A stretch of 64,000 nucleotides of DNA from Adineta vaga (GCA_021613535.1 CP075494.1:11594001-11658000), one strand, 5' to 3'. Shown: positions 11,152 to 52,600, numbered from the stretch's first letter. The notes: generated by a model from the sequence alone, not told the origin. A program made the numbers and translations.

Positions 11152-11737
11152 TTAAATTTGTTCATGTTTAAGTAACCAAAGTTTAACATTATTTCGTTCA
11201 CCTCCTGCATAGTTTCCTACTTGTCCACTCGAACGAATAACTCGATGACATGGTACAATTAATTGAAATGGATTACGACGCATGGCTGTACCAACAGCAC
11301 GTGCAGCTCGTTTATTTCCAGCTAATTCAGCTAAATGACCATAAGTAATTGTTTGACCGAAAGGAACACGATTTAAAAGTGTACGCCAAACATTTTCTTG
11401 AAATGAATCATTTTTTGAAATAATATCAGGACAAAGTTCAGGTGTTTTTAATGAATTCGTTGCACTATGAAAATAATCGTTAAGCCATTTATGACATGAT
11501 TGAAGTACTGAATCTTTTTCATCATATGGTTGTTGAAATTCAATTGATTCACTAAAAAGCGAAAGTTATGTTTAGACGAGAAGACAATATTTTTTGTAAT
11601 ATTAACTTCATATCAGGCAAAAATGATTGATCATTAATAGTTGAGATTTGTGTAATAGAATGAAGACCTTGTGAACAATAAGATATTGCTAAACGACCTA
11701 TTGGTGATGTACAAATTGCTGATGAAGTTTCACACAT
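11152..11737 (-). CDS. MGMT: Methylated-DNA--protein-cysteine methyltransferase, 2 exons
   Basis: TSPIGRL N-terminus, FQENVWRTLLNRVPFGQTITYGHLAELAGNKRAARAVGTAMRRNPFQLIVPCHRVIRSSGQVGNYAGG with the active-site PCHRV motif. Confidence 0.95.
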
Positions 11738-12193
11738 TTTTATAAGGATTTTCATCAAAAAAATAATAAATGAATACGAAGAGGAACAAGCAAACAACCA
11801 AAAATTACCAAATGATGTCAGTTAACCAATCAGAATGAAGTGATCCATTTGGAACGATCCTTTGCTATTGAAATCAATTCATTATGGAAATAATTATAAA
11901 TTTTAGTTTTTTTTTGTGAAAAAATTATTCAACCATCAAAAAATGTAATTGTAACATTTAAACATCGCTATTGTATAGAGATATTTTTTCATTGGTTTTT
12001 CAAATTCCAATGAATTGTGGCGCTTCCTTAAACGCTAAGCAACATAATTGATCACTACTGCTTTATTTACCTAACGTAACGTAATTCTAGAATTCATATA
12101 TGAATATTTTCTGTTGAACAAACTCTCTTTGTATTGATATTTTATTTTGTTATGTGTAAATGCAAAAAAGATTTTATCTTTAAAATAGATTGA

Positions 12194-39689: not shown

Positions 39690-41037
39690 CTATTGTCTAC
39701 GTTCAAGATTTTTCAACATTGCAAACGAACGTTGATAACGATGACGATGTCGAACATATGAATCTGAAATAGCTGCTGCATAATATGTAAATATTGCAAT
39801 TGTCAATATGTTTTTCATGACAAAAAATAGATTTTCTAATGTACTCGCATCAAATTTGACTACAACAACAATTCGTAAACAAAGTAATAGGCCATCTTCA
39901 CTTGCCATTTGTGCTAAAATACCCCACAATTCAGTACCAAAGACAAAATCAATCATGATTAATAATCGTTCTCGAACTGTTGCCTTTGACCATTGAATGA
40001 TATCATATCGATGATCATGTTTTCGTTTACCAGACAGATTAACACTGAACTGCGACAAAGATATAAAATAAGCAGCTAGAAACAATGAACATTAGAGAAA
40101 TATGAATAGTAATCACAAAACCTACCGATAATGGCTTTCATGATATTTTTGTTTTTCTTTTGAATGAGCTGTTCACTTTGTCCAGCCATTGTCGAAGCAA
40201 AACTATGAACACATGTTGTTTGCCATGAATACAACGAATCATTAAGAATATTTTACTCGACAATATCAGAAGCCGTGGAAATAAAATATGTGATTAACTG
40301 ATCAAGTCCTAAGTTACCAGTGATCATCCTTATCAAATAAAAAGATATACTTTCATACAACAGAGAAAATTTTCGTTTACCATCGAAGACAAATGGTAGT
40401 AAGTACAATGACTTGTTCTAACATTTCATCAGGCATTTGTTTCATCAAACATAGACCATACATACACCAATCATTAGAATTCATATCTTCTTCTAGATCA
40501 CATGTACTATTTGTGATGCCGATGGTAGAAATTGCTTGATCAATTGGACTTTTTTGAAACTTCATGAGATGCAATTGTTTTCTTTCTTTTAGATGCCAAC
40601 ATTTACTAACATAAGATTCTAAGTTGATCTCTGCTTGTCTTGCTTGTAATTTGTTTTCTTTGATAGATTGAACAAAATATGCATATCGTAAAAACCATAA
40701 TGGAGGCATTGTAACTAGAATTGATCGAGAAGTATTTGCAATGTTCATTTATTTCGAATAGCTTACATGTGATGAATATGGCCACGCCTGCATTAATCCA
40801 AAAGTATTCGACTATTTTTTGATACACGTGAATTTTTAATAGGATAATCCACCAATCGATAATAAGAAAGGTTATACCTAAGTAACAGAAGTTTGATAAC
40901 ATCCATAGTTGTTGTTTTTCACACATTGCTCGAGCATAACAGATGATGAGTAGAATAGACATGATAATTCGTGCAAAACCATTTCGTATGACGAAAACGA
41001 TCAGTTCATCTGTACGATAATTATTTTCGTCTCTCAT
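39690..41037 (-). CDS. TMEM26-family membrane protein
   Basis: EQVIVLTTICLRW...DQLITYFISTASDIVE and EDGLLLCLRIVVVVKF...LFFVMKNILTI match TMEM26 motifs (TAADILE, QDGPFL..RL, FF..KN). Confidence 0.7.
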
Positions 41038-41443: not shown

Positions 41444-44400
41444 CTATGCATTGATCGTAATGGAAGGATATATAATAAGACCTGAGGATGAACCTGAAAA
41501 AATACGAGTTTGTCGTTTAGTCATATTTTCGTATTGTCTAACAACATTATGTACAGCTTCAAGTGCATCCGACGATTTCCGAGCGAGTATGGCAACAGTT
41601 CCTCCACCACCACCACCTGTAATTTTAGCGCCGAGTAATACTTTTGGTGATGCTGATGATGACGATAGTGATTGTTGTCGTATTAAATTTACGAGTAAAT
41701 TTATTTCATCACTAGCTAGATCACATGCTCGATAACTAGCATCTGCTTGAAACATTAATTCACCAAGATTAGACAGGTAATCAGTACAAAGATAATGATC
41801 ATTCTTTAATAATTGTTCAAAAAGTTGGACTCGAAAATTTTCTTCAATTGGATGAGCAGTCGCTGCACGTAATGGATAGATTTCATTCGAATCGATTTTA
41901 CTCAATGGATCAAGATGCAATGATGATTGAAATTCTTTACCAACTAGTTTTTCCGGTAATAACATTCGATATTGATTATTAAATTTTGAAAGTGTTATTT
42001 GACATAGATGATGAATATTATCTGGTAGATTGAGTAGTTGTTTGCCCATAAAAGTAGCGGTCCGTACTCGTCGATATGTTGAACCAGCTGTCGACCGTTT
42101 AACACCTGAATCAATCCCGAATAATTGAATATTTGATGGTATCGTAACATTATGAAACGATGGATTAGGTACATGTTGACAAAGGAGAGAAAATAAATGA
42201 TCAGTACAAGCATGAACACATGTCATTTGATCCATAAATCCGCATGAACTACCAACAACATAATTTTCAACAAATTGACAAAGCAATGCTAATTCAGTTT
42301 TCGATATAAGATTATCTAGATTGAGGCATGAACATGCTAAAATATTCACAAGCTATGACAAAGTTAATCACTAATCTGTCTTTACCTGCACGAGCAACAG
42401 CAACTTCAAGAGCAGCAGATGAAGCTACACCCTTGTTACAGGGTACATCAGAAATAACAACTATATTGAAACCAACTGGAAGGATACTGCTCTCTGTTTT
42501 TTTTATCAATTCAGCTAAAATACCTACTATATAACTAGGCCAATTGACTGGCTCTTCGTGTGGAATTGTAGTTCTTTGTTCTTGAGTATACCATGTTTCT
42601 AATCGTTTTCTTAATGTTTCATTTTGATTATCAAAAAGTATACTCATAGGAATCTCACGATCCCATATAGTTAAGTTATGTTGATTGATAGATTTGATTT
42701 CCACATTATCTGTTTGGATACTAATAAGGCGAATTGTACTTGTGTTGGCAGGTTGAATAAAAGCATAAGTACGCTGTGCAATTGGATATTGAAGAACATG
42801 CGAACCAGAATAATCAGCAAAACCTAAAACGAATTATAAAGATCATCGTACGTTAAGTTATTCTTTTAAACATGCCTCCCATAAGGTCTAAACGACCCGG
42901 AGCACTAGCACTGTGTATTGGTGCATTAGAAATCGAGAATAAAGTTTGCACTTTATCGATTTGTTTTAATAACGACCATACATTCGAAATCGAAGAGTTG
43001 TTATGTGATTTTTCTCTTTTGTCAACAGTAAATGCTCGAAATGTTCGATAATATTCTTTTGGATCACCAATATCATATCGTTCACCATCTAATAAACAGC
43101 CAAATAATTGTCCATTCTGTCGAAGACCATTCATTGCTTCGCGTAGACCAAGTTCTACTGGAATTGTTTCTTGTTCTAGTTTTTGCTCGTGCAACCGAAG
43201 ATAGTGGAAAATTGTCGGTGGTAGAATATCCATTCCAGCTTGACAAAGAAATGAATTTTGAGATAATTTAAATTGAAAACGATTCATGGCTATATTAATA
43301 GAAGGTTTTTCGATCATATCGGTAATTTGGAAAAATTGTCTATTTTCCAGATCGATATCTGATTGTAATAGGCCAGTGCTTGAAAATTCTTCAGCAGTAC
43401 ATGTCATAACACCTGTAAGACCTTGCCGAGACGGCTCAGAGACATGTTGGCGATATGCAGTAAGTAATTGCTGTAAACATGATTGGTGAGTGTTGTTGGG
43501 TTGATAAAGATGATCACTTAACATCACAACAAATGGTTCATTACTAATATATTGTTCTGTTTGAAGAACCGCATGACCAAATCCTTTTGGTGATGTTTGT
43601 AAAATATAATCAATTTTATTATGTGGATGTGAGGAAAAATACGATTGGAATAAATGTAGTTGTTCAGGAGCAATTACAAGCAAGACTTCTTCAATACCAG
43701 TTCCTTCGGCGAAGATTTCTTCTAGAAGAAGATCAAGTACTGGACGACATGTCCATTGAGTCGAACTGGATTGAGCAATCGGTAAAAGAATCTTAGGTAT
43801 AATTGTACTTTGTGGACGCATTCGTGTACCAAGTCCAGCAGTCGGTACAACAACTTTTCGGACGACTGTTTTAGAAGATTTAAATGAAGATTTCAGGACA
43901 TTCGTATCGATGATATCTTTTTTTAACATAGTTACTACATGGTCAGAGAATGGCGTACGTGATTGAACAGACCAGCCTGTCGATGAAAATAGATTATCCC
44001 ATTCTTGTCGAGTTCGTTCCTTAGCTTTGTGTAGGAAAAACATGTGTAATGATAGAAGAGCATGGTGATTACCATTTAAATCAACTTCACGTTCGATGAC
44101 GCAGAGATGTTTAGATGGAATATGATTTAAAATAAGTTTCGCTTTTTCATCTGGCCAATCATGAAGAACACGTGATAGTAGATAGAAATCAGCTGTAGGT
44201 AATGAACCAGAAAATAGATCTCCACTTTGAAACTCAATCTTTGGATGAGATTTTGCTAAATTGATAACTTCAGGGCGATCGATACAGATTAAATGTTGAT
44301 TGGAACAGTGATTTGATAATTCACATAAAAGAGCACCCATTCCACCACCAAGATCAACAATAGTCGATGATTGAAATAGTTCATCAGGAAGTACAGATGC

Positions 44401-45784
44401 AATTCCGTGCCAATCTTGATTCGCATATGAATTCAGTACTCTTTGTGTTAAACGCATAAGTTCAGGATTTTTTGCAATTTTAGAAAATAAATCTTTGTTT
44501 GCATGCAGTTGGTGGTTACGATACTTCAAACTCGGTAACCATCCTGAAATGTATTCATCTTGTAACCAATAGAGAGCTCGATCACGAATGATACTATCTG
44601 AATCAAACAGAAGACGACCTCGTTGTGTAATGGTATATTCGCCATCGACGGATGATGGTTTAATAAAACCGAATTGATTCCATACTCGTTGAATTTGTTC
44701 CTTCAATTGTTGATCATCTTTATCAGATTTGTTTCCATTATCGAGTAAACTTGTCTTCTGTTCTAAGCCTATTTTAAGTGCAAATGCTGGCCAATAGTTC
44801 TTCGACATCTAAAAGAAAATAGATATCAAGAAAACGTTATCGATCGAAATCAATTGACCTGTTCAATATCAGCACAATTTTCATTATTACAATCGTTTAA
44901 TCGAGCTAAGATATTATGTTGCTCATCAATAATACATCTTGATCCATCATGTAACATTTGTACAAGTGCTTGACCGTTGTAAAAATTTTCAATTTGTCGA
45001 TATCGACGACCTTGTCCAGCATCCATACCATGACGATCAATAAAGAACCAACCATTTTCATCTCGTGCTCGTGCTAAACCTTTATGATAAACGTCCAGAT
45101 CAAGAAAACTTATTTTGTAAGATGATGACGATGAGTGAAGAGCATCACCATTTTCATCGATAGCATGAAAGAGACCATCGATAGAACTACGAACCACAGC
45201 ACTTCCCTAGAGTTTCATAATCCAATTGAACGTAAACTAACGAAGAAAAAGAACTTACTTCTCGAAAATCCCCTGCATACGAATGTGGACCTGAGATCAT
45301 TTTTCCTTTAGGATCAATATGATAGTATTGAAGATTAAAATCTCGCACAGGACATCGATATGATTGAAAATTACCACACCATTGCCATATGAAACTATAC
45401 GCAGAAGTTCCTGTCGTTTTAATATGATACCAATAATCAATATTCTAAAAGTATTCACATTACATTATCATTTGATTTCAACATATGACAAACCTGTACA
45501 GCAGCAAGATTTTCATAGAAACCAAATGTACGAGAAAAACGTTGAGGATAGGCATCTTCTCCTCGGTCGTTAATATGAAATGCTGCTCCCGTTCGATCAA
45601 TAACTGGAGCTAAACCGGGTGAATGAAACGGTAAAACAATTTTGAATCGATTTTCATACAATGGTTGTTGACTAGACAAACAAATGTGATATGTACCACA
45701 TGATGAAACTTTCGAATAAGTCCATTTCTGACGACGAATGATATTTTTCGATAGAATTAATTGTGAAAATCGATTCATTAACAT
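41444..45784 (-). CDS. Gene B: WG-repeat + SAM-dependent O-methyltransferase + GalU-type NTP-sugar pyrophosphorylase + L-arabinokinase-like GHMP kinase fusion, about 5 introns
   Basis: WG-type repeats (FHSPGLAPV, RTFGFYENLAAV, WCGNFQ, YAGDFRE, YHKGLARARDENGWFFIDRHG). Methyltransferase motifs VDLGGGMG, GDLF, LSRVLHDWPDE. Nucleotidyltransferase motifs VPTAGLGTRMRP...PK, QTSPKGFGHAVL, IEKP, YDIGD. Kinase motifs APGRLDLMGG|FADYSGSHVLQ, VPCNKGVASSAA, GAKITGGGGGGTV. The methyltransferase, nucleotidyltransferase and start of the kinase lie in one 651-aa ORF (42853-44808). Confidence 0.88.
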
Positions 45785-45841
45785 CTAAAATGAATTCGAA
45801 TACTATGAAAACGAACAAAATAGGAAAGAAAATGATTTTAT

Positions 45842-48800
45842 TTATATTTCAGCAGGTGGTTTTCTCATATTACAATTTTGACAAAGAGGATAGTCTGTGT
45901 AATTATTGATTAATTCTTTATATCTGTCACCAGTCCAGATTTTCAATATATTTTGATCGGTATGTTGAACATTACCAAATGAACCTAATGATAATCGTTC
46001 TTGATCGGGAGCGCAGCAAGGATCATATCGACCACTATGATTAATCCATGCTTCTTTACCTAAAAATGGACAAACACTTTCAGGATGAATTGTTGATGAA
46101 CCACTATTTTCATCCAATTCAAAGAAATTTTCAAGTTTAATCTAGAAGAGAAAAGGCAAAATGAGAAAGAATTCTCTTGATTTTTCAGGCATAAAATTTT
46201 TTACTTGTTTTCCTATAGGTAATAATTGTTGTTGAGCGATGTTTTGACATTGAATAACACATTGATTCCATCGACGAATGGCGTCAGTTGATCGACGTAG
46301 ATTTTGATCTTTGATTTGTTTAAAATGAGCCCATAAATGATGACCTTTGATACGATCGATACCCAATGAAATGCCCAATTTGACAATCTATTAGAATTAC
46401 TTTTATTTTTAATATCAAGTTAACTCGAAAGAAATGAAAATATTGAAAGAAATTTAAATGAACTTAAGAAGATATTTTTATGCAATAGGAAATGTTATGG
46501 GAAAGTTCTATGCTTGTCGGAAGGTATGTACATGACTACAAACCATTCCAAAGATTTTCTATGACTATAAGATGAGTCAAACTTTATTACCTCGGGAATT
46601 TCTGGTAAATTGATTTCCATGAAAGTCAATTGCAATGTTACTGTTGCTCGATTACCACCTTGTTCTGCCATCTGATCACGAATATGAATGAATTTTTTAA
46701 TATTATCCAGCTAGATGAAGATATAGAAAAGCGAGATACTTAAAAGAAAGAAACAATAATCAAATACTTGTCTATCAAGTTTAGAATGTTTCATCACTAT
46801 TTCTTGAGTTTTTTTTGTAATTCCATTCCAAGAAAATTTCACATCACTCAAAACTGGCATGAGTAAATGAGCCCATTCCGCAACTGAATTTTAAAATGAA
46901 TTCTTTCGATTAAAGATTCACAAAGTATCTATACATACCAGAATGACCTTGTGGAGAATGAAATGATCCATTCGTGGTAAGATTCAATTTAATATTATAA
47001 TCTCCACATAGTTTAATGATATCTTCGAATGTACGACCTTTGGCATCACGATACATAAGTGGTTCACCCATTGTTGATGGAATCTAGATATACAAAAGTA
47101 AAATTTGTTATGTGCGCGAATAGAAAGAATAAAGATAGGCGTTTTGTTCTTACAATTTCTTGTAAACCATGTGGTGCTGTTTCAGTAACAACTTGTTTAA
47201 TGATATCAAAATCCATTCTACGACGACGAATTTTTGCTTCTTTGCGCGCTTTTTGATGTGGTGAATATTCCGAATGCTGTTCACACATGATACAACTAAA
47301 ATTACAATCATCAGGATTCGTATCAAATGTTATTCGACGTGGAGCGGCTAGTTGCTCAATAGGTTTTGGTTGAAGACTGATTGATTGTTTTAGTTTTATT
47401 TGATTATTTGTCAATGTTGAATATATATTAATTAGTTCATCAACATGTGTTTCAATTGATGGTACTTGTCCATCTCTAGAATGAAGATAACCATGTTGAC
47501 CTAATTTGTCAAGTATATCTGGTTGTTGAATAACTCGAAGAATAGTATCCGCAAGTGATGAAGTATCACGATGCACAAAGGTCAATCCGTTCACTCCATC
47601 TTTGACTAATTCACTCTAAAAATAACGAAAAAATTTTTACGATAAATAAATTCAAACGATTCTCACCATTCCACCTTGGTTAGCTGTAATCACAGGTACA
47701 TGACATTGCTGTGCTTCATGAATAACTAATGGAGAGTTTTCATCCCAAATTGATGGAACAACGATACAATCAACATGATTAAAAACGCAATCTACAATTT
47801 CAGAATTCTTATATTCAGGACGCCATTCAACAGAAATTCCTGCTGCTTTAGTCATTGCTTGAAGATTACTAGTAGTAGCAGGATCTGGTCGACCATAAAT
47901 GGCCAGAGAAAATCGATCAGCAAGTTTTGGTTGAGATCGAACGATATGTTGTGCAGCTTCTACGAATTGATTGATACCTTTTGATGCAGAATGTCGTCCA
48001 ATATATCCGAAAACAATGGGTTTGTTTGATTGACGAACACGATGACGATGAGCTAAGATTGAACGATCAAATCCATATGGTAAAAATTTGACTTTTTCAG
48101 TTGCTAATCCAAATTCATTAACAAATCGTTTCTGTAAATGATGTGAAGGTGCAATAAACATATCGATGGCATCACAAGTCTCTCGTACTGTACGCATTCG
48201 TTCATTAATCCACCATGTCCAATATTCTGTTTCACGATCTTTATTTGCTGTAGTACCTATAGTAGAAATACAAAATACTTTTATATGATTTTAAAATGAT
48301 ATACCTGTTGCAAAACGCGACGTGAAACATTTCGTGGCACATTTTTCATCCTTTTGTTCTGTACATAATTCGTAAGGTATCTGGCCATTATATGTTGAAG
48401 CTACACCATTAACTAGAAATTGCCCACGTGGACACATAAGCCAATAATCATGTAACGTGTAGAGAATCTTTGCTCCTAGGAGATCTCGTGCACGTTGTGG
48501 TAATGTTAATGATAAATGATTTAAATGACCAAAATGAACAATATTTGGCTTCGGATTAAGTTTTTGACAGATATCTTCGAAACAACGATCAATATCTGTA
48601 TTTACAAATCTTTGATAGGGTGCTTCTCGTGCATGATTAATCAAATAGATTGGTATAGTTGGATCGTGTTCATCTTGAGTTTGTCGAACAAGAAAATCTG
48701 CACGAAATGGATCTTGTTCACGTGAAATAACCGATACGCTAGATGTTTTTCCCGAAAGACTCAATCGAACTGCTAATGTTTGTGTATAAACCTATACATA

Positions 48801-48969
48801 ACCATTTTCTTTAATTCTTAGAATGAGAAAAATTTATACATGCCTCTGAACCTGCATTAAATAACGGTGGATACCCATGATTAACTAATAAAACTGATGG
48901 TTTTTTAATAGTTGAAGTAGAAAAAAACGCACGTTTTACTTCTCTACATTTACCCAAAAAACGAGTCAT
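45842..48969 (-). CDS. Gene A: GT4 (GT-B) glycosyltransferase + radical SAM/SPASM-twitch fusion, about 8 introns
   Basis: NHGYPPLFNAGSEVY, HFGHLNHLS, TLHDYWLMCPRGQF, FGYIGR, VPSIWDENSPLVIHEA (EX7E). ORF 47064-47594 runs directly from the GT C-terminus into RITFDTNPDDCNFSCIMC (CxxxCxxC). Then STMGEPLMY, LTTNGSF and auxiliary Cys motifs CPFL...DPCC...CQNC. Confidence 0.9.
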
Positions 48970-49643: not shown

Positions 49644-52600
49644 TTATAAACGTTGATCGTGTTTATTTGCTCGAATTGCTGCTTTTCGTTTAACAGATTT
49701 AACGGTAATACGTTGTGGTGCTTGTTTATTTAATGTTCGACGATATTTCTCACATGCTAAATCAAATGTAACTGCAAATGGATTGTGAATATTCGATTCG
49801 ATTTTTTGTCGAATAAATAATTCAAATATTTGTGTTCGTGTAAACCATTCCAAGAATAATTCAATTGTATGCGGTTTTGATTGAATAAAATGATCAATAT
49901 CAAATGATTGTTTCAAATAATCTTTATAATTATAACATGATTGAACAAAGATCGACATGAAAACATTTCGTAAACGTTGTTGACATTCATCTAATGATAG
50001 ATTTTGTCGATTCTTTCGTAAGGATGAAATTTCTTGTTTGAGTTCTACTTTGAAAATTTTTGGAAGAATTTGATATTGAAAAATGGAATGATGAAGATTA
50101 TCAGTTGATCCACGTAATGATTCATTAGGAAGATAATCATTAATGGAATATATATGATCATGATCAATATCAACAATAAGAATATCAGAATTATCTTGAG
50201 ATAGAAATTCATCATTTTCAGAAAGATAATGTTCACAAGAACGTAATATGCCGATGATATAAGGTGTGGGCGCTTGAAGAACATCAAGCATCAATGGTGG
50301 TAATATTGGAACATATGTATGTGGCCAAGAAAATGGATAAAGAAGACAGATAAATGTATTAATCAAACGAGTTAATGAGCCAAGTTCATCACCAATAAAA
50401 ATGATTTTTTGTTCGTAAAGAATAGATGAGAAAATTTTGATAATTGTATCTAAAACAAATGATAAAATAGATTGTTTCTCTAATTCTATAGATTGATTTA
50501 TCTATCATACCTGTCGATAAATTCAATAAACCACCTGAATCAATCAATTGCTTTCGTCGATCATGTTCACATTTAAGTGTATATAATCCTACTGTAGTTG
50601 TATGAATATGTATCGCATCACCGCGACTCGGTAATCGATGTGGATAAATTTCTTTAAGAAATCGTTTTGCATCATCTTCTTTGTACGAAAGAAACAATTC
50701 CGTTGCTGTTGAAAGTATTTTTTCATATAAATCTATCGTATCACACGGAGAAACAATACATAATGCATTTAAAATTCCTTTATGAAGAAAACGTGAACAA
50801 TAACCATGTTGTCGATTTCCACGCATATCGGTTAATGTAAAACGAAAATATTCGGGTCGTGGTCGTTTAGGTGATAGAATTGAATTGATAGTATGATGAG
50901 AATTAGTATTATTATTTGAATCATGTTGATCAGGAAAACAGAAATATTTTAATGTTGATTCGTCGATTGCATCTGTTGGATATTTAAAACGAATTGATGT
51001 AGATGTTTGAAGTTGAGGATTGATATGTAAATTTGATGAGGAGAGACAACCAGTACCATTAGCAAAATAACCAAGCTCTTGTTCGGGTAGAATATGTACT
51101 ACATAATCATATAAAGTTTTCATTTCTTTTACAGTTGTTAAATGATTTGGTTCAGTAAAAAGACTAGTCAAATGACTTCCTGTACCTAGATGAAACAAGA
51201 TATAATTTAGACAAAGCAAACGATATTTTTTTCGCAATTACCTAAAGTATCATAAACATTTCGAACTCGACTAACATGATCCAATCGAGATGTTCGAATT
51301 TCATCAGTATTTTCCGATGTTGTACTTCCTGAATCATCACTATCAATCGTCATTGCAGTACTATCATTGATAGATTTCTCATTTAAAGATTGTTTTGATG
51401 ATGATAATGGAAGAATTCGTTTGAAACGATTGAGCAATCCACGTGGCGAAAAGAATGCTAATGATGATGATGATTTTGCTTTTGTTAAATTTGGTTCACT
51501 AATACCTTTCTTCATGGCAGATTTTAGATTCGTTAATGGTCGATTTTGTTTTGATTTAGAAATCGAGCCTTGAAAGTTCGTATCATCTTCTACAGTTTTC
51601 ATTGTTTGTGTTCGTTTACTATAGAATAAAAATTGTTCACCATCATCTTTTGTTAATGTTGGAAGAGGTGTTTTTAATTCTTCATAGATATTTTCATTTG
51701 GTACAATGTTCGTAGTTGGATCAGTATGGATACATTCTTTGTCTAATGGAAGAAGACCACTCGATAATAAAGCACTTGAAACACCCGCAGTCAAATCCAT
51801 ACAACTAACAGAACGAGCACCTAGAAATTAAAAAAATCAAAACTTAATTCATTAATGAAAATAGTGGGATGAATAGGATCAAGATTTATATTTTGCGTAC
51901 ATCAAGGACTTAACAAATGACAAAAAAAACACACACACAATAGAATAAATGATCAAACTTTACCGAGATCAAATGTAGGTGAATCACTTTCTGATGTTGA
52001 AGATGAAGGCACTTTTTGATCCAAAGTTGTTGATAAATGACCGTATCGAGTTTCATGTTCAAATGTTCTTGGTGGTTTGTTTGGCGCAAGTTGTTGAAAT
52101 AGAGGATTGTCTACAACTGGTAGTGGACTTTCTTCTCGTTCGCTAACTTGTTTTTGCACACTAACTGGACTATAAATAGATGAATTGCGTGGAACTTGAA
52201 ATCCAGTTGAACTAGTTGAACGTAATGTATGTTTTCGATTCAATGAAGAACATAATTCTTCATCAATGGAAGTATGTTCAGGAAAAGATGTTGTTTGAAC
52301 AATATATTTTGCAGATGAAGATGATGATGTTGATGAAATAGATGGAGAATTAAGTACGGATGAATTACGAATGGATGTATGACGAATGACAGAAACTGGA
52401 CGACGTTCAAGAGTTGATGTAGGTGAATGATTTAATTTAATATGTGAACGACTTATCAATGAAGGACTATCAAAGACATCATCACTTGAATAAGAATTTG
52501 CAATAATCACAGGAGTACCAATATCAGATTCATATAATACCTGTAAGAAACCAAGAGAAGAAGCTATGTGATCAATAGAAATGTTTATGCTTACCCATGG

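Follow-up and report, generated by a model that had tools for sequence, protein, structure and literature searches.

Two adjacent genes of non-animal ancestry in the bdelloid rotifer Adineta vaga probably make a modified sugar compound

A stretch of 64,000 nucleotides (nt) from the bdelloid rotifer Adineta vaga (GCA_021613535.1, CP075494.1:11594001-11658000; its full length is hereafter called the window) carries two neighbouring genes of non-animal ancestry, gene A and gene B, which together encode six domains: a glycosyltransferase of family GT4 fused to a radical S-adenosylmethionine (radical SAM) enzyme, followed by WG repeats, an O-methyltransferase, a sugar-1-phosphate nucleotidyltransferase and a GHMP sugar kinase. 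The two genes probably make a modified sugar compound. Their core, i.e. the GT4-radical SAM and WG-methyltransferase fusions, is by sequence comparison homologous to a widespread bacterial operon composed of a short-chain dehydrogenase/reductase (SDR), GT4-radical SAM, WG-methyltransferase and a histidine phosphatase, and the rotifer version would represent a eukaryotic branch to which a sugar-1-kinase and a UDP-sugar pyrophosphorylase have been added. Foreign genes in bdelloids are known and gene B has already been annotated as hypothetical; what is new is the pathway, or enzyme system, itself.

The gene pair

45842..48969, minus strand: gene A, fusion of a GT4 glycosyltransferase and a radical SAM enzyme whose C-terminal Fe-S domain is of twitch/SPASM type; 9 exons, 842 amino acids (aa)
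Gene A exons, minus strand: 48969-48844, 48791-48305, 48256-47667, 47615-47154, 47083-46939, 46883-46768, 46710-46591, 46387-46205, 46141-45842; stop codon 45844-45842
41444..45784, minus strand: gene B, WG repeats, Methyltransf_2, NTP_transferase (GalU-like) and GHMP sugar-1-kinase; 6 exons, 1362 aa
Gene B exons, minus strand: 45784-45494, 45444-45258, 45205-44859, 44808-42876, 42823-42386, 42336-41444; stop codon 41446-41444

Two adjacent, co-oriented fusion genes had been proposed in a first-pass annotation made from the sequence alone, and both are present on the minus strand, A before B. Their exons sum to 2529 nt (gene A) and 4089 nt (gene B), and neither joined frame contains an internal stop. 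Exons were joined solely for this reading-frame check and for the classification of single-nucleotide differences; homology searches used single exons or the database proteins P0153 (A. vaga) and P0255 (the gene A orthologue of A. steineri). P0153 (1362 aa) is the product of gene B, deposited at NCBI as I4U23_025670, a hypothetical protein of Adineta vaga, and a 651-aa frame from the window, which runs 5 codons into intron 4 of gene B, agrees with it at 645 of 646 positions. P0255 matches over residues 2-838, each exon in turn, and is 75-86% identical to the three gene A exons compared. Both genes are single copy in the A. vaga assembly (100.8 Mb in six contigs), in which the window lies at 11.6 Mb of a large contig.

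Domains and catalytic motifs

47300..47323 (approximate), minus strand: radical SAM cluster motif CNFSCIMC (CX3CX2C), exon 4 of gene A, read from the sequence
45845..46117, minus strand: C-terminal auxiliary Fe-S domain of gene A, Cys pattern C-x17-CC-x44-C-x2-C; Pfam SPASM 41.6 bits
44859..45784, minus strand: WG-repeat domain of gene B, aa 1-275, after a basic N-terminal extension of ~20 aa
43900..44808 (lower bound approximate), minus strand: O-methyltransferase domain, aa ~276-575, PF00891 Methyltransf_2
43050..43870 (approximate), minus strand: sugar-1-phosphate nucleotidyltransferase domain, GalU-like, aa ~590-870, PF00483
41447..43000 (upper bound approximate), minus strand: GHMP sugar kinase domain, galactokinase/L-arabinokinase type, aa ~890-1362

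All six domains of the first-pass annotation were detected by Pfam in single exons and database orthologues, with WG_beta_rep weak in the rotifer protein (E 0.07-0.2), and the catalytic motifs it had described as intact are so on direct reading. For the glycosyltransferase, Glycos_transf_1 scores 61.9 bits in the window exon (cut-off 26.4) and 92.2 bits in P0255, where Glyco_transf_4 reaches 41.7 bits. The EX7E motif ENSPLVIHEAQ is intact, and ENSPLVIHE is invariant in the gene A alignment (A1). The best solved relatives of this domain include MshA, whose acceptor is phosphorylated, and Tll1590, which we take to be a sucrose-phosphate synthase.

The three cysteines of CNFSCIMC are invariant in both alignments (A1 and A2), and Radical_SAM (PF04055) scores 37.9 bits in P0255 (cut-off 29.5). 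A structure model of this part (predicted local distance difference test score, pLDDT, 88) matches radical SAM folds; a fold search returned many SPASM/twitch enzymes at a template modelling (TM) score of ~0.6 and no decisive neighbour. By sequence, the core is best matched by anSME. The auxiliary domain holds five invariant cysteines only, and the seven-cysteine SPASM motif (CX9-15GX4C ... CX2CX5CX3C ... C) was not found in it; assignment to the SPASM subfamily, which has two auxiliary 4Fe-4S clusters, was rejected, since the five-cysteine pattern fits one auxiliary cluster (twitch). Four of these cysteines (C-x17-C-x44-C-x2-C) have aligned counterparts in BtrN (4m7s/4m7t), whose auxiliary-cluster domain is the sole meaningful match in the Protein Data Bank (E 0.005), two OTU1 chains with E > 1 being noise. 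BtrN, the 2-deoxy-scyllo-inosamine dehydrogenase of butirosin biosynthesis, is likewise a radical SAM enzyme whose C-terminus forms one auxiliary 4Fe-4S twitch domain, and it acts beside the GT4 enzyme BtrM on a sugar-like substrate in aminoglycoside biosynthesis. Gene A nonetheless differs from it in that the similarity spans ~70 residues, the core is nearer to anSME and no other btr-type genes lie nearby, so that membership in the BtrN family was rejected. The C-terminal domain suggests a single-auxiliary-cluster twitch enzyme that would oxidise or rearrange a sugar-like substrate.

In gene B, the WG region aligns with a Sorangium WG-repeat protein over 246 aa at 44% identity. Its model is an all-beta repeat module (pLDDT 89) for which a fold search found generic propellers only (BamB and designed proteins, TM ~0.45), and the domain is predicted to be beta-propeller-like. 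Methyltransf_2 scores 95.1 bits (cut-off 22.3), and both the SAM motif VDLGGGMG and the His of LHDW, corresponding to the catalytic His of COMT-type enzymes, are intact. NTP_transferase (57.4 bits) places the third domain in its family; the GalU equivalog TIGR01099 was rejected at 102.4 bits, below its cut-off of 326.8. The kinase domain matches GHMP_kinases_N (54 bits) and GalKase_gal_bdg (30.4 bits), both over their cut-offs, as well as GHMP_kinases_C; galactokinase TIGR00131 reaches 124.9 bits against a cut-off of 226.65, and the domain can be assigned to the family but to no particular sugar specificity. The remaining motifs AGLGTRMRP, GRLDLMGGFADYSGS, PCNKGVASSAA and TGGGGGGT (the G-rich GHMP motif III) read intact.

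FKP/FKGP (L-fucokinase/GDP-fucose pyrophosphorylase) combines a nucleotidyltransferase and, after it, a GHMP anomeric kinase in one chain, and gene B shows the same arrangement. Unlike FKP, however, it has a GalU-like transferase, lacks the Fucokinase Pfam domain, and has the two domains fused to a methyltransferase and WG repeats. A second sugar-salvage pair of this kind is formed in plants by the L-arabinokinase ARA1 and UDP-sugar pyrophosphorylase, and the gene B kinase resembles ARA1: next in line after the bdelloid proteins, the named matches of the Didymodactylos carnosus gene B orthologue are nearly all from plants and mostly annotated as L-arabinokinase, with the kinase domain alone being matched at 34-40% identity in nearly all cases.

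Both rotifer proteins begin with basic, acid-poor extensions of ~20 aa (48901-48969 in gene A, 45722-45784 in gene B), which bacterial homologues do not have; similar N-terminal extensions occur in the protist proteins described below. In the two rotifer proteins they would be compatible with an organelle presequence.

A bacterial operon with the same core

One genome per bacterial or archaeal species was scanned for relatives of gene A, and at least 571 genome stretches encode one. The matches listed fall into Myxococcota, Pseudomonadota, Planctomycetota, Verrucomicrobiota, Nitrospinota, Latescibacterota, Cyanobacteriota and other phyla, and among them the bacterial GT4-radical SAM proteins show ~45-49% identity to the rotifer protein along its full length (~800 residues). 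The bacterial fusion (~783 aa) keeps all Fe-S cysteines and the EX7E motif.

Neighbouring genes were counted at the best 80 loci (WG repeats and methyltransferase) or at 81 loci (SDR and phosphatase, both located by targeted tblastn). A WG-repeat open reading frame (ORF) lies within a few bases of the GT4-radical SAM end in 79 of 80 loci, and in 55 of the 80 a methyltransferase domain follows in the same ORF; identity to the rotifer protein is 41-48% for the WG part and 22-35% for the methyltransferase. The gene for an extended-SDR epimerase/dehydratase of nucleoside diphosphate (NDP) sugars directly precedes GT4, its end meeting the GT4 start or lying just short of it (49/81), and a His_Phos_1 phosphatase stands right after the WG(-methyltransferase) gene (56/81). 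Examples of the operon are found in Sorangium, Myxococcus, Halomonas, Azospira, Ectothiorhodospira, Planctomycetota, Verrucomicrobiota, Nitrospinota and Hormoscilla. A prokaryotic cluster of glycosyltransferase, radical SAM and WG-methyltransferase, which the first-pass annotation had mentioned, is therefore real and very common. Its expectation that the domains are clustered in prokaryotes holds for this core and fails for the other two, as neither the nucleotidyltransferase nor the GHMP kinase lies within 10 kb of any of the best 80 bacterial loci.

The bacterial and rotifer systems thus have the GT4-radical SAM fusion and the order GT4-radical SAM, then WG-methyltransferase, in common. The bacterial genes, in contrast, are intronless and in most loci accompanied by SDR and phosphatase, in whose place the rotifer has kinase and pyrophosphorylase; a specific counterpart of the bacterial SDR or phosphatase was not found in the A. 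vaga genome.

Some loci depart from this scheme. In a few, a PhyH-type Fe(II)/2-oxoglutarate dioxygenase is inserted between GT4-radical SAM and WG-methyltransferase (L029 12343-13368, L045, L048, L068), and the metagenomic protein P0160 has a PhyH Pfam domain beside its methyltransferase domain. Locus L096 (2131-12663) holds a divergent bacterial-style cluster in which GT4 and radical SAM are unfused and accompanied by a WG-methyltransferase gene, a His phosphatase, a carbamoyltransferase, a 464-aa protein of unknown type, a PFK-type kinase and a DeoC aldolase. Rfam detected no riboswitch and one tRNA only in six bacterial loci.

Six-domain proteins in protists

Chromera velia (Cvel_1502, 2458 aa) and Ochromonadaceae sp. 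CCMP2298 (B484DRAFT_265579, 2196 aa) combine all six domains in a single chain, as do metagenomic or transcriptomic relatives (P0004, P0361, P0363, P0364). The contigs carrying these proteins look eukaryotic, with sparse gene calls and WD40 and zf-CCHC fragments. Compared with P0004, the rotifer GT4-radical SAM part is 51-53% identical and the methyltransferase-nucleotidyltransferase exon 40%. The protist order is WG, methyltransferase, nucleotidyltransferase, GHMP kinase, GT4, radical SAM; the rotifer, whose two genes share all six domains with these megaproteins, places GT4-radical SAM first, an arrangement that matches the bacterial order and relates to the protist one by circular permutation. 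The presence of all six domains in a single protist polypeptide speaks strongly for six activities working in one process, and it lends support to the one self-contained pathway that the first-pass annotation had inferred.

Quick IQ-TREE trees (LG+G4) with SH-aLRT support were built for GT4-radical SAM (57 rows, 820 columns) and WG-methyltransferase (43 rows, 585 columns). Rotifers are monophyletic in both (SH-aLRT 100 and 99), and the named bacteria form a clade of their own (100). In both trees, a branch with support 100 separates rotifers and protist fusions, each other's closest relatives, from the main bacterial clade. The WG-methyltransferase protein of L096 falls at the base of the eukaryotic (rotifer plus protist) side, and Physarum on the bacterial side. 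An approximately unbiased test of 'rotifers with bacteria' was discarded as uninformative, given that this grouping already amounts to one side of a branch in an unrooted tree. Since the trees are unrooted, the rotifer-protist grouping rests on bacterial rooting together with the shared kinase and pyrophosphorylase.

Assuming a bacterial root, the bacterial operon would have given rise to one eukaryote-type version with six activities. An unsampled eukaryote, or a bacterium near that origin, may have passed this version to the bdelloid ancestor, and bdelloids would now keep it as two genes in an order matching that of the bacterial operon. Given that root and the shared kinase and pyrophosphorylase, these three steps appear to be the simplest history.

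Distribution among bdelloids and foreign origin

An exhaustive profile search with the large exon against 1.84 billion cluster representatives returned 41 proteins at E <= 1e-30. In word-indexed searches with names attached, gene-B-type proteins come from bdelloids only: A. vaga, A. steineri, A. ricciae, Rotaria socialis, R. sordida, Rotaria spp. Silwood1 and Silwood2, and Didymodactylos carnosus. Gene-A-type proteins are found in the same rotifers, a few other eukaryotes (MMETSP1068, Physarum) and very many bacteria. No animal other than a bdelloid appears among all 90 gene-B-type or the best 120 gene-A-type matches. Independent assemblies of R. sordida and D. carnosus also carry the tandem, A then B, and introns interrupt the WG region at shared positions in A. 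vaga and R. sordida; the pair, with its introns, therefore predates the split of these lineages. The two genes are of non-animal ancestry and entered bdelloids before Adineta, Rotaria and Didymodactylos diverged.

The foreign origin claimed by the first-pass annotation is upheld in that homologues in animals are confined to bdelloids and both trees place rotifers with protist and bacterial sequences. It stands as non-animal ancestry, with the amendment that the closest relatives in both trees are the eukaryotic six-domain fusions and not prokaryotes.

Two observations concern the orthologous loci. In R. sordida (L094 323-2286), a MULE transposase gene lies upstream and the flanks are unlike those of A. 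vaga. In D. carnosus, P0002 contains an 18-aa insert exactly at the position of intron 2 of gene B in A. vaga and R. sordida (L095 ~11319-11894), probably an in-frame intron left unspliced in the annotation.

Introns, transcripts and a spliced leader

42824..42875, minus strand: intron 4 of gene B, GC-AG, begins GCATGT; contig joint 42822>42875 with 3-nt ambiguity
48792..48843, minus strand: intron 1 of gene A, probable GC-AG, begins GCATGT; from the sequence and the A. steineri orthologue
45785..45841, minus strand: spacer between the genes, 57 nt from the gene A stop to the gene B ATG; an AATAAA overlaps the gene A stop

The 13 introns (eight in gene A, five in gene B) agree with the roughly 13 spliceosomal introns first claimed, and for 11 of them the excision shows as a joint in spliced contigs, which come from three runs and two studies (X1 and X3 from one, X9 from the other), so that spliced transcripts are present. 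The runs are known by codes only, and their label 'RNA' is, for these three, a software guess; they were taken as transcript assemblies because their contigs are spliced. The 11 stretches skipped in the contigs (49-203 nt) are identical to introns predicted from the sequence; they include all five of gene B, and 10 of the 11 are GT-AG. For the exception, gene B intron 4, only the +1 placement yields a splice-site pair (GC..AG), and P0153 reads GRLDLMGGF across the junction. The contig alignment covered 42300-48299, outside of which gene A intron 1 lies; its support is protein evidence alone, as the A. steineri orthologue reads ...FNAGSE|VYTQTLAV through the junction. Intron 2 of gene A is supported by a loose contig end at 48258. 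Both non-GT introns of the pair (42824-42875 and 48792-48843) share the start GCATGT.

Genes A and B are on separate contigs in X1, X3 and X9, none of which bridges 45787-45826. Gene A contigs end at 45827-45850, i.e. at most 15 nt past the stop codon; those of gene B in X1 and X9 start at 45786, two bases ahead of the ATG, where a spliced-leader (SL) acceptor AG is found (45786-45785). At 45786, the X9 gene B contig continues into nine non-genomic letters, CTTGGTAAG, the reverse complement of CTTACCAAG. The rotifer SL is GGCTTATTACAACTTACCAAGAG (PMC3795323, Table 1), and CTTACCAAG plus the AG common to the acceptor is its 3' end, as observed in a single X9 contig; the SL sequence is not encoded anywhere in the window. 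As the SL tail of this contig abuts the ATG, trans-splicing of the gene B mRNA takes place right at the start codon, which lies 57 nt past the gene A stop. A 57-nt gap separates the genes in R. sordida too (L094 9943-10001). A short intercistronic spacer and downstream SL trans-splicing, the latter on one contig, are both found and fit an operon-like, SL-resolved arrangement.

Contigs of X10 are unspliced, differ by ~2% and cover introns as well as the A-B junction, and are therefore DNA of another haplotype or strain. Their listed differences in gene B comprise 18 synonymous and 16 non-synonymous changes (pN/pS, the ratio of non-synonymous to synonymous polymorphism, ~0.3, which is indicative as the list is partial). 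X1, X3 and X9 also contain additional low-depth contigs at 43300-43499 and 44300-44499 that run into unlike sequence (loose ends 43396 and 44488), for which transcripts of a paralogous methyltransferase and assembly chimeras are both possibilities.

Taken together, the pair shows the marks of acquired genes, i.e. no orthologue in other animals, non-metazoan grouping, host flanks, introns and transcription. Its short host-type introns, polyadenylation signal and SL trans-splicing would all have been acquired since entry.

The proposed pathway and its alternatives

That the two genes are functional A. vaga genes of non-animal ancestry encoding one biosynthetic module for a modified glycoside is a reading to which we assign a probability of about 0.7. 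In this module, the GHMP kinase would phosphorylate a free sugar at C1, and the GalU-like domain would convert the sugar-1-phosphate to a UDP-sugar. The sugar is probably of galacto configuration, which is weakly suggested by the placement of the kinase in the GalK/ARA1 group. GT4 might then transfer it to a small acceptor that every cell contains and that may be phosphorylated: the relatedness to MshA and Tll1590, along with the bacterial phosphatase, would fit a scheme in which a phospho-acceptor is glycosylated and then dephosphorylated. By hydrogen abstraction, the BtrN-like twitch radical SAM enzyme would oxidise or rearrange the glycoside, and the methyltransferase would O-methylate the product, while the WG module may bind the substrate or hold the enzymes together. 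The putative end product is a tailored, methylated glycoside. The SDR and His_Phos_1 neighbours in bacteria would speak for small-molecule, NDP-sugar chemistry, and the eukaryotic kinase and pyrophosphorylase, as opposed to the bacterial SDR, may be two routes to a particular NDP-sugar donor.

Several points tell against this reading or narrow it. Enzyme activity, substrate and product cannot be read from a sequence: what the data establish are the domain families with their intact motifs, the permanent joining of GT4 to radical SAM, the constant WG partner and the accessory genes of sugar type, and the chemistry is what we infer; the guess of a galacto-sugar comes from family-level similarity to GalK and ARA1 alone. 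NCBIfam matches, be it to generic GT4, radical SAM, GalK or GalU families, are all far under their cut-offs. The BtrN match is marginal, and the radical SAM model is about equally similar (TM ~0.6) to the maturases SuiB, SkfB and PqqE of RiPPs (peptides made by ribosomes and modified after translation) and to the sugar enzymes BlsE and DesII. The trees are quick ones with a midpoint root, and rotifers are sister to the sampled protists rather than nested within them, so that the trees point to no particular donor. Lastly, assembled contigs reveal neither expression level nor a polycistronic precursor.

The enzymes might instead modify a macromolecule, either a peptide or protein (RiPP-like, or by glycosylation combined with radical cross-linking or oxidation) or RNA, with WG as the recognition domain. 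This would explain why the radical SAM core is nearest to anSME in sequence and why peptide maturases (SuiB, SkfB, PqqE, anSME, CteB) are the top structural matches of its model; moreover, beta-propeller-like repeats often bind proteins, and the operon has no conserved enzyme dedicated to forming an acceptor. A TM score of ~0.6 does not discriminate, however, and the auxiliary domain holds one BtrN-type cluster whereas SPASM peptide maturases have two. Among ORFs of at least 110 aa, neither a conserved precursor-peptide gene nor any other such neighbour was found, and the accessory genes that are conserved are of sugar type (SDR, histidine phosphatase, kinase, pyrophosphorylase). We consider a macromolecular substrate unlikely.

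Another suggestion concerns the role of the system rather than its chemistry and is compatible with the glycoside module: the product may be a sugar or nucleotide derivative, toxic or antiviral in the manner of viperin, made by a mobile cassette that bdelloids and protists would have captured for immunity. The bacterial tree ignores taxonomy, with short branches across phyla, and the genes beyond SDR and phosphatase vary between loci. In Sorangium sp. So ce269 (L010 1-9772), a defence-island-like run of helicase, MZB, PLD-nuclease and DUF6361 genes lies directly upstream, and WYL/WCX (L021) and NYN/OST-HTH (L029) genes are near other copies. Pfam GT4-conflict also scores over its own cut-off, yet below Glycos_transf_1. 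Still, such neighbours occur in few loci only and are uncounted, and PADLOC returned only generic radical SAM (pVip) and methyltransferase matches. Bdelloids do use acquired biosynthetic genes against a fungus, and those genes are, like the present pair, non-metazoan, integrated, intron-bearing and expressed; the main text of that study, however, is without a glycosyltransferase, radical SAM enzyme or methyltransferase (PMC11258130). All in all, a defence role seems rather improbable.

An old eukaryotic six-domain gene, inherited vertically and kept in bdelloids and a few protists, would also leave rotifers as sister to the sampled protist clade and homologues in stramenopiles, an alveolate and an amoebozoan. 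Yet it would need to have been lost from every other sampled animal lineage, none of which yielded a homologue among all 90 gene-B-type or the best 120 gene-A-type matches, and it sits badly with Physarum on the bacterial side and a bacterial-style contig (L096) basal to the eukaryotic WG-methyltransferase clade. Bdelloids, moreover, are established as massive acquirers of genes; foreign genes in them were reportedly described by Gladyshev in 2008 and Flot in 2013. Vertical descent is accordingly very hard to credit. An artefact, be it mis-joined contaminant DNA, against which the first-pass annotation had cautioned, or dead pseudogenes, can be set aside, as nothing in its favour was found and it is countered by 13 short host-type introns, 11 of them removed in transcripts, a rotifer SL, the same tandem in independent assemblies of three genera, X10 DNA contigs over introns and the A-B junction, open frames with intact motifs, and a G+C content (0.33-0.36) set against ~0.30 in the neighbouring flanks.

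Beyond the module of non-animal ancestry favoured here, a broader claim would be that of an undescribed cross-kingdom pathway, shared by bacterial species in the hundreds, by several lineages of protists and by bdelloids, in which GT4 and a twitch-type radical SAM enzyme, permanently fused, make radically tailored O-methylated glycosides as a new class; the animal version would start from free sugar via the captured kinase and pyrophosphorylase and be expressed in bdelloids as an operon-like, SL-resolved pair with the gene order of bacteria preserved. We put this forward tentatively, at clearly less than even odds.

Genomic setting

49644..51237, minus strand: flanking gene with uDENN, DENN and dDENN domains (Pfam), an ordinary eukaryotic/metazoan gene
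39690..40085, minus strand: last exon of a TMEM26-like flanking gene (PF09772, 43.9 bits)

Pfam confirmed the metazoan genes that had been claimed on either side of the pair.

Outlook

A literature search found no paper describing the present cassette, and no curated family, solved structure, defence-system model or paper was found for the GT4-radical SAM/WG-methyltransferase system in any organism. The interest therefore lies in an orphan enzyme system and not in one more foreign gene pair: it is ~45-49% identical between rotifer and bacteria over ~800 residues, recurs in at least 571 genome stretches, is built into giant protist proteins and has been kept in an animal lineage. The product of this orphan pathway should be discoverable by ordinary experiments. 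Domain fusions show which of the activities belong together, and the swap between SDR and phosphatase in bacteria and kinase and pyrophosphorylase in eukaryotes offers a testable hint as to how the sugar donor is supplied. For the biology of rotifers, the pair is a multi-gene foreign module that was given introns, a poly(A) signal and SL trans-splicing, with its 57-nt spacing retained.

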